A stretch of 63,768 bases of DNA, the filler included, from Lenisia limosa (Eukaryota; Protista; Breviatea): NCBI GenBank assembly GCA_001655205.1. It is 20 parts of 20 records of this genome, joined end to end, with 100 filler letters (N's around TTAATTAATTAA, not from the genome) between each part and the next. Parts side by side here need not be neighbours in the genome. Positions count along the whole stretch, not along the records: positions 9,329 to 16,774 come from LPNZ01007135.1; 19 more parts are not named here. One strand, given 5' to 3'. Below, in pieces: positions 14,885 to 15,995 of the stretch; the first letter of the stretch is position 1; every line of letters begins with the position of its first letter. The translations under genes and the position numbers were made by a program. The notes below the pieces were generated by a model. That model was not told the origin of the DNA. It did not search any database and saw nothing but the letters and a program-made list of their open reading frames with translations.

Positions 14885-15995
14885 ATGATGAATATCACAA
14901 TTGATGAGCATAAATTTACCAAATTAGCAGAACATTCTCATATTTCTGGATTTGGGGAGTCTAAAGGTTTAGTCGGACAACAAAGTGCTCAGCATGCGTG
15001 TCAATTTGTGAGAGACTTGGCTTCTGAGAAAAAAATGGCAGGAAGGTCTTTGCTTTTGGTGGGCCCCTCAGGAACTGGTAAAACTGCTTTAGCGCTTGCA
15101 TTATCAAGGGACCTTGGGAATAAGGTATTTTCTTGTTTTTTAAAACGATTCCATTTTGTCCTGTGAGCGCTTCTGAAGTGTATTCGTCTGAAGTTAAAAA
15201 AACAGAGATTCTTAAGACACATTTTAGACGATCTATTGGTGTTAGAATTAAAGAAATGAAAGAAGTTTTTGAAGGTGAGGTTGCAGAGATGCAACCTTCT
15301 ATTGTATCAGACTCGATTGTATTTTTGTACTGTTTATTCTGGTCTCGTTTGTTGTCACGCTTAAATCCTCAAAGGGATTAAAGCATCTCAGGCTTGACCC
15401 CTCAGTTTATGATTCTTTTTTGAAGGAAAGAGTTTTGGTAGGGGATGTAGTCTATATTGAGGCGTCTTCTGGTTTGGTAAAGGTTTTCATTTGATTTTAC
15501 ACGAGAGTAGGAAGGTCAGATACCTATGCATCTGATCATGATCTTGATTGTGAAGACTTTGTTCCACTTCCAAAAGGGGATGTACACAAAAGAAGAGAAG
15601 TCATTCAATTTTTATCTTTGCATGACTTAGACATTGCAAATAGTTCACATAACTCTAAAAAGACAGAAATTACAGATAAATTGAGAACTGAAGTTAATTC
15701 AGTTTATGCTTTGTTATAATTCTTGATTGTTAATCGATATGTTCAACAAGGGGTAGCTGAAATTGTTCCAGGTGTACTGTTTATTGATGAGGTACATATG
15801 TTAGATTTGGAGTGTTTCACATATTTGAATCAAGCATTAGAAGGATCAGTTTCTCCAGTTGTTGTTCTTGCTACCAATAGAGGATTTTCCAATATTAGGA
15901 ACTCCTCTCTTCATTCGCCTCATGGCATTCCATTGGATTTACTTGACAGAGTATTGATTGTTAAAACAAGCTCCGTGAGTTCTTTTATTTTCTGA
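14885..15995 (+). CDS. RUVBL1: RuvB-like 1 (Pontin/Rvb1) AAA+ ATPase, divergent, with four non-canonical micro-introns; C-terminal domain not found
   Basis: Exons 14885-15124, 15148-15318, 15342-15482, 15504-15701 and 15726-15974 give 333 stop-free codons. Motifs: HSHISG, GLVGQ, KKMAGR, Walker [35 protein letters not shown], Walker [24 protein letters not shown]. Confidence 0.93.

Follow-up and report, generated by a model that had tools for sequence, protein, structure and literature searches.

The AG at the 3' end of introns is among the most constant signals in eukaryotic gene expression. Here, we describe four introns of 21-24 nt that end in CG or TG instead, in a gene for RuvBL1 located on a stretch of DNA from Lenisia limosa (Breviatea; assembly GCA_001655205.1). 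The stretch, hereafter the window, is 63,768 nucleotides long and joins 20 parts of 20 records, with 100 filler letters between each part and the next. The gene lies in the piece that comes from record LPNZ01007135.1 (positions 9,329 to 16,774), and all positions are those of the window. Tiny introns of the GT-AG type are found in ciliates (15-16 nt in Stentor, about 25 nt in Paramecium) and in chlorarachniophyte nucleomorphs (18-21 nt). Abundant non-canonical introns are found in Fritillaria borealis, in euglenids and in dinoflagellates such as Amoebophrya. In these cases it is mostly the 5' end or both ends that are altered, or the introns depend on their secondary structure, and they are not 21-24 nt long.

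Ultra-short spliceosomal introns also occur in myxobolid myxozoans, with medians of 22-27 nt and mostly 20-25 nt in T. kitauei (PMC13644364), and in the dicyemid Dicyema japonicum, with about 26-27 nt (PMC13644364; also PMC4986447, PMC6543705, PMC6736024, PMC2222250). In these animal introns, the 5' signal is reduced to 'GTa' and there is no real polypyrimidine tract (PMC13644364). A residues are weakly conserved near the 3' end and their distance from that end grows with intron length (PMC13644364), which puts the A at a near-constant spacing from the 5' end. How the shortest animal introns are recognized is still to be determined, according to a September 2026 paper (PMC13644364). In human U2-type introns, TG serves as a 3' splice site only alongside a nearby AG and never alone (Szafranski et al. 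2007, PMC2374985). Ascetosporean Rhizaria had been named, in a preliminary description of the present locus, as a further lineage with non-canonical introns. This parallel did not hold up. Mikrocytid introns are 16-17 nt long and highly conserved in sequence, according to one report (PMC10245619), and canonical introns are reported for other ascetosporeans (PMC11069148). We found no report of constitutive GT...YG micro-introns (Y, pyrimidine) in a literature search that did not include Ogino et al. 2010, the first dicyemid intron survey.

Excision of four inserts from the RuvBL1 message

The gene model is given below, with TIP49 numbers referring to positions on the Pfam profile PF06068 (ORF, open reading frame).

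14885-15124, plus strand: RuvBL1 exon 1, 80 codons from the ATG; Walker A motif GPSGTGKT; within ORF 14843-15166; TIP49 3-77, E 1.6e-18
15125-15147, plus strand: micro-intron 1, 23 nt, GT..CG, phase 0; gap in the RNA contig
15148-15318, plus strand: RuvBL1 exon 2, 57 codons, open; TIP49 78-128, E 1.1e-19, contiguous with exon 1
15319-15341, plus strand: micro-intron 2, 23 nt, GT..TG, phase 0; gap in the RNA contig
15342-15482, plus strand: RuvBL1 exon 3, 47 codons, open; TIP49 144-187
15483-15503, plus strand: micro-intron 3, 21 nt, GT..CG, phase 0, in-frame TGA; gap in the RNA contig
15504-15701, plus strand: RuvBL1 exon 4, 66 codons, open; TIP49 188-259; contains an unspliced intron look-alike at 15600-15620
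15702-15725, plus strand: micro-intron 4, 24 nt, GT..TG, phase 0, in-frame TAA; gap in the RNA contig
15726-15974, plus strand: RuvBL1 exon 5, 83 codons; Walker B motif DEVH; TIP49 262-342, E 3.7e-40
15975-16774, plus strand: start of intron 5 (GTGAGT...), long, with its acceptor beyond the sequence piece

The evidence for excision comes from two runs, both public and from the same study. One is a library of poly(A) RNA, and the other behaves like whole-genome DNA. The contigs of both were aligned to positions 14086-16774. The RNA run gives a single contig of 1246 nt (depth 363), which aligns to 14895-15974 without a mismatch. The alignment has exactly four gaps, of 23 nt (at 15124/5), 23 nt (15319), 21 nt (15482/3) and 24 nt (15702), 91 nt in total. 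RNA depth is zero upstream of the gene and after 15974, where intron 5 begins. In the DNA run, whose contigs total 71 Mb, a 2578-nt contig of depth 39 crosses 14086-15987 without any gap, and no contig of this run lacks any of the inserts (depth of the insert-less form, 0). The four inserts are also kept in a contig of an independent ENA assembly (L001, 3284 nt), so two DNA assemblies agree.

The inserts are present in genomic DNA and missing from the mature message. They are therefore true introns, excised exactly from an abundant poly(A) mRNA, and neither the scars of a pseudogene nor read-through or errors of assembly. Because the assembled mRNA lacks exactly these 91 nt and the DNA contains them, chance is not at issue. 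The RNA contig begins at 14895, 10 nt past the presumed ATG (14885), and an Illumina adapter sequence directly precedes it. As the contig thus starts at an adapter, inside the gene, it does not fix the 5' end of the transcript or the start codon.

The preliminary description, made from the sequence alone, had placed the four inserts correctly; its coordinates, sequences and lengths (23, 23, 21 and 24 nt) agree with the window sequence. Its central claim, that RuvBL1 contains micro-introns without a terminal AG, is borne out by an RNA contig of depth 363 in which they are excised, by two DNA assemblies in which they are kept and by ends that are not AG. Transcripts retaining the inserts, which it had set against its own reading, are not seen in the assembled RNA contig. 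It had also pointed out canonical alternatives for introns 2 and 3, at 15319-15374 (56 nt) and 15472-15507. Both exist in the DNA and are missing from the assembled transcript, which uses neither. Finally, joining the five exons reproduces the stop-free frame of 333 codons with phase 0 junctions that it had proposed, and the collinearity with RuvBL1 after removal of the inserts is recovered on the TIP49 profile.

These data leave virtually no weight to the idea that the locus is a pseudogene or an assembly artefact, with inserts that are small insertions or errors. The RNA contig with its four exact gaps refutes it. In addition, an RNA depth of 363 against a DNA depth of 39 indicates high expression, the mRNA is collinear with an open frame and intact catalytic motifs, and both DNA assemblies carry the inserts.

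The inserts might also be removed at the DNA level by programmed elimination, like the internal eliminated sequences of ciliates, the mRNA being transcribed from processed DNA. Some small parasites, dicyemids among them, are reported to eliminate DNA and to form circular DNA. 'Circular' contigs are mentioned by Zverkov 2019. However, every contig of the DNA run that covers an insert site has the insert, and the two DNA assemblies agree. Moreover, the inserts start with GT, are T-rich and lie in phase 0, as spliceosomal introns do, and their boundaries show no TA-TA or longer direct repeats. We consider DNA elimination very improbable.

The five joined exons make 999 nt, that is 333 codons with zero stops, and every junction is in phase 0. 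In a profile search, each exon alone matches Pfam TIP49 (PF06068), and the order of the matches is collinear. Introns 1 and 3 separate adjacent profile positions (77/78 and 187/188), intron 4 falls within two positions (259/262), and intron 2 lies in a variable loop of the profile (128 versus 144). Compared with solved structures, exon 5 matches RuvB-like 1 best (2.8e-36), ahead of RuvB-like 2 (1.6e-30). Both Walker motifs, A (GPSGTGKT) and B (DEVH), are intact. With the best full-length representative protein, the spliced product shares only 54% identity, and an exhaustive search of representative proteins returned nothing above 74% identity to exon 5, nor the gene's own protein. The exon-5 ORF is found on one ENA contig only, which covers the same locus. 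From these matches the gene is assigned as an expressed, divergent orthologue of RuvBL1 (pontin, a TIP49-family AAA+ ATPase), the C-terminal third of which lies outside the sequence piece. No in-frame stop occurs in the 333 exon codons, and a ciliate-type genetic code is thus not indicated.

A second, fragmented RuvBL1 locus, at 2150-3500 of a Logan contig of run DRR438470 (L002), was considered as a further case of tiny introns and rejected. Its frame is broken by TAA or TAG where relatives have glutamate. It looks like an unrelated ciliate RuvBL1 using TAA and TAG as sense codons, which the gene caller split into ORFs.

Intron boundaries without AG

The sequences of introns 1 to 4 are GTATTTTC, GTATTTTT, GTTTTCAT and GTTTATGC. 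All four start with GT (GTA in two, GTT in two), and their 3' ends are CG, TG, CG and TG, respectively. The description given earlier is thus accurate for four inserts out of four: GT start, T-richness, phase 0 and a final pyrimidine followed by G, with an in-frame TGA in the 21-mer and an in-frame TAA in the 24-mer. None of the four contains an AG. Downstream, the nearest AG is found at +19, +32, +1 and +24 for introns 1 to 4. The case of intron 3 is telling: the next exon opens with AGAG, and the AGs at +1/+2 and +3/+4 are bypassed, the assembled transcript using the preceding CG.

Because flanking bases repeat, the placement of the deletions is ambiguous. Intron 1 may be shifted by one base to the left (15124-15146), which gives GG..AC, and so may intron 3 (15482-15502), again with GG..AC. 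For intron 2, a shift to the right by one base (TA..GG) or by two (AT..GT) is permitted. The bases flanking intron 4 permit no sliding, and GT..TG is its sole boundary. Given the boundaries permitted for each intron, GT..YG is the only rule common to all four. Among the defining features of U2-type GT-AG introns, presence in DNA with absence from mRNA is observed, and so is the 5' GT; the 3' AG is not. The splicing machinery does not need AG for these four introns.

How do these introns compare with the systems described above? They resemble those of myxobolids and dicyemids in not exceeding 30 nt (21-24 nt), in their GTA or GTT starts and in having an A 4-7 nt before the end, at a fixed spacing from the 5' end. 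Their lengths fit the shortest myxobolid introns better than the dicyemid ones. However, the accounts of myxobolid and dicyemid introns speak of AG at the 3' end and of 'canonical 3'ss signals', whereas the RuvBL1 introns end in CG or TG in all four cases. With the introns of ciliates, nucleomorphs and mikrocytids, they share a narrow length constraint, AT-richness and a (here candidate) branch A a few nucleotides from the 3' end. The lengths differ, and the non-AG 3' ends distinguish them from ciliate and nucleomorph introns. As in Fritillaria, euglenids and dinoflagellates, working splicing tolerates a departure from GT-AG, but the RuvBL1 introns retain both their initial GT and their last G, and depart from the canonical form at position -2 alone. 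Finally, the human TG sites belong to U2-type introns that start with GT, as the RuvBL1 introns probably do, and they show that the second catalytic step can accept YG. In contrast to the human sites, CG or TG is the sole site seen in the assembled RuvBL1 transcript. For introns 1, 2 and 4, the first 18 nt downstream are free of AG, and the AGs adjacent to intron 3 are ignored.

Excision could also proceed by a route other than the major spliceosome: an IRE1/XBP1-type mechanism, a tRNA-endonuclease-type mechanism or the minor U12 spliceosome. A length of 21-26 nt recalls the XBP1/HAC1-type intron, and the 3' termini of U12-type introns vary. The junction regions, however, fold no better than shuffled sequences (z from -0.01 to -0.61) and have no common structure. 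With folding z-scores near zero, excision appears independent of RNA structure, and neither the twin stem-loops of an IRE1/XBP1 substrate nor significant structure of the bulge-helix-bulge kind is found at the junctions. Nor do the cut-site bases follow the CNG|NNG pattern of IRE1/XBP1 cleavage. As for the minor spliceosome, the 5' ends GTATTT, GTATTT, GTTTTC and GTTTAT do not match the U12-type consensus [AG]TATCCTT, and no TCCTTAAC branch box, expected 10-15 nt from the 3' end, is present. Such routes therefore seem highly improbable.

A possible first-G rule for the 3' splice site

The four introns share an internal anatomy. Their T content is 52-61% (57% in intron 1), against 32.5% in the exons. 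Counted from the 5' end, position 17 or 18 of each is an A preceded by T, and no other G comes between this A and the intron's last base, a G 4-7 nt further on. The preliminary description had inferred a 3' site set by its distance from a branch A; the present features fit a related rule, built post hoc, which requires GT, a TA at 17/18 and then the first G at 4-7 nt. We scanned positions 14885-16100 with it. The rule recovers the four introns, together with two exon sites and two sites within intron 5. Both exon sites are poor in T, which makes up 7 of 22 bases in one and 10 of 24 in the other. The rule is incomplete: the sequence GTGAGTTCTTTTATTTTCTG at 15975 fails to be spliced as a 20-nt intron.

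We propose, with a probability of about 0.8, that introns 1 to 4 are micro-introns of spliceosomal type, with GT at the 5' end and pyrimidine-G at the 3' end, for which the A of AG at position -2 is dispensable. A U2-type spliceosome would remove them, still using the first and the last G of the intron and no longer needing the A at -2. The GT would be recognized together with a branch A at a near-fixed distance, which may correspond to the minimum span that the machinery can bridge. The candidate branch point is the T-preceded A, fixed at 17-18 nt from the 5' end, and the second step would take the first G, 4-7 nt downstream of it. Such 'first G' scanning would be a variant of the classical rule of the 'first AG after branch point'. 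In spliceosome structures, the two outermost G residues of an intron pair with each other, and the branch A is the partner of the A at -2. In the RuvBL1 introns, the G-G pair would be kept and the -2 A is absent. The -2 contact might then be dispensable when the branch point is only 4-7 nt away from the 3' site.

Several observations temper this proposal. The RNA support consists of one assembled contig and, as assemblies lose rare variants, there may be minor isoforms or some intron retention. A single gene was examined, and it was chosen for looking unusual. The rule of an A at 17-18 and a first G after it was derived from the very introns that it explains, and is therefore a hypothesis and not a result. 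Lastly, exon 4 contains a T-rich, in-frame GT..TG 21-mer without AG (GTCATTCAATTTTTATCTTTG, 15600-15620) that is kept in the RNA contig. Since this look-alike is unspliced, recognition needs more than GT, T-richness and a terminal G.

Beyond RuvBL1, micro-introns of this organism may have given up the AG requirement generally, the 3' site being the first G a few nucleotides past a branch A at 17-18 nt. We put this forward tentatively, as somewhat short of an even bet. The serious remaining rival is a gene-specific oddity, in which non-AG ends would be peculiar to RuvBL1 or to a few genes, and the other micro-introns of the organism would normally end in AG. The window was picked by a reader searching for oddities, and a second candidate in it, a minus-strand chain of ORFs at 11049-11862, gave no clean model. 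Besides, published logos of ultra-short animal introns are described with a 3' AG (PMC13644364). On the other side, all four micro-introns of the gene lack a terminal AG. Leaving aside how the window was selected, this would be very improbable with non-AG ends being rare. Also, the annotation pipelines behind the published logos, BRAKER3 included, are built around canonical GT-AG introns, and these logo pipelines (BRAKER3 in the case of H. salminicola) may have missed YG ends. A peculiarity of one or a few genes is thus a possibility to be taken seriously, though a rather doubtful one. AG-independent splicing is shown so far in one gene, and a wider system is plausible.

RuvBL1 thus offers four constitutive introns of an essential gene, with CG or TG as the sole 3' site and evidence at the transcript level. 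As a natural case, they allow the role of the A at -2 in the second catalytic step to be studied, and they bear on the choice of the 3' site when the room between branch point and splice site is nearly nil. There are also consequences for annotation. Gene finders that model only canonical intron ends would split or lose genes of this kind, which would affect gene counts, completeness scores and claims of gene loss in reduced parasite genomes. If AG loss were general, annotation restricted to GT-AG would systematically break or miss genes in such genomes. The low gene counts and the BUSCO values of about 50-76% of dicyemid- or myxobolid-type genomes would then be partly an annotation artefact and not gene loss.

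Intron 5 and the surroundings of the gene

After 15974, the RNA contig goes on with another 207 nt, which do not resemble the window sequence. Of these, the first 30 nt encode LPRKDLKTIL in frame, collinear with RuvBL1, and the letters of this exon are found nowhere in the window. A strong GTGAGT opens intron 5, which extends over 800 nt or more; in the DNA, contigs run on without a break to at least 16573. Thus, a long intron and micro-introns coexist in the RuvBL1 gene. Within the same region, the depth of DNA words rises from 16426 onwards, from a single-copy value of 38.8 to about 45,000 at 16696-16774, where many contigs stop. A very high-copy repeat in or beside intron 5 probably ended the scaffold.

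The sequence piece has a GC content of about 36%; it includes scaffold gaps, a tRNA-like fragment and repeats dispersed along it. Immediately before the start codon of RuvBL1, the 93-nt stretch 14740-14832 also occurs on another DNA contig of the same run with 5 mismatches, and depth is twofold there. Either the upstream region has a second copy in the genome, or the stretch is a small repeat. Further upstream, on the same strand, lies an ORF of 235 codons with about 50% GC, against about 36% in the genome (14122-14640), for which positions 412-1119 of contig L001 fill the N gap at 13888-14084. This ORF has no Pfam match and no paralogue in the protein collection. By language-model features it falls near YqaJ / PD-(D/E)XK nuclease clusters (protein atlas score 0.92), and it could be the remnant of a mobile-element nuclease.

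The minus-strand region 11049-11862 contains four overlapping ORFs in shifting frames, with an RGRGRGRG tail. Sampled words from it are found at 36% in the RNA run and at 90% in the DNA run. Searches of Pfam and of solved structures gave no relatives of these ORFs, and the protein atlas gave low-score leads only. When GT...G introns of 18-32 nt able to join the frames were searched for exhaustively, only unconvincing, T-poor models resulted. The region may be a lineage-specific gene.

Also on the minus strand, a tRNA-like fragment at 11930-12009 abuts an N run (12010-12020), followed by a T run that resembles a pol III terminator. It was not called by ARAGORN, and its 5' part is lost in the gap. 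It may be a short interspersed element (SINE) or a truncated tRNA gene. Comparison with Rfam gave one sub-threshold chance match only, and no tRNA genes were found. Finally, a non-coding element of about 230 nt is present in two copies, 12639-12870 and 13291-13504, about 640 nt apart and 81-97% identical, one of which is interrupted by a 10-N gap.

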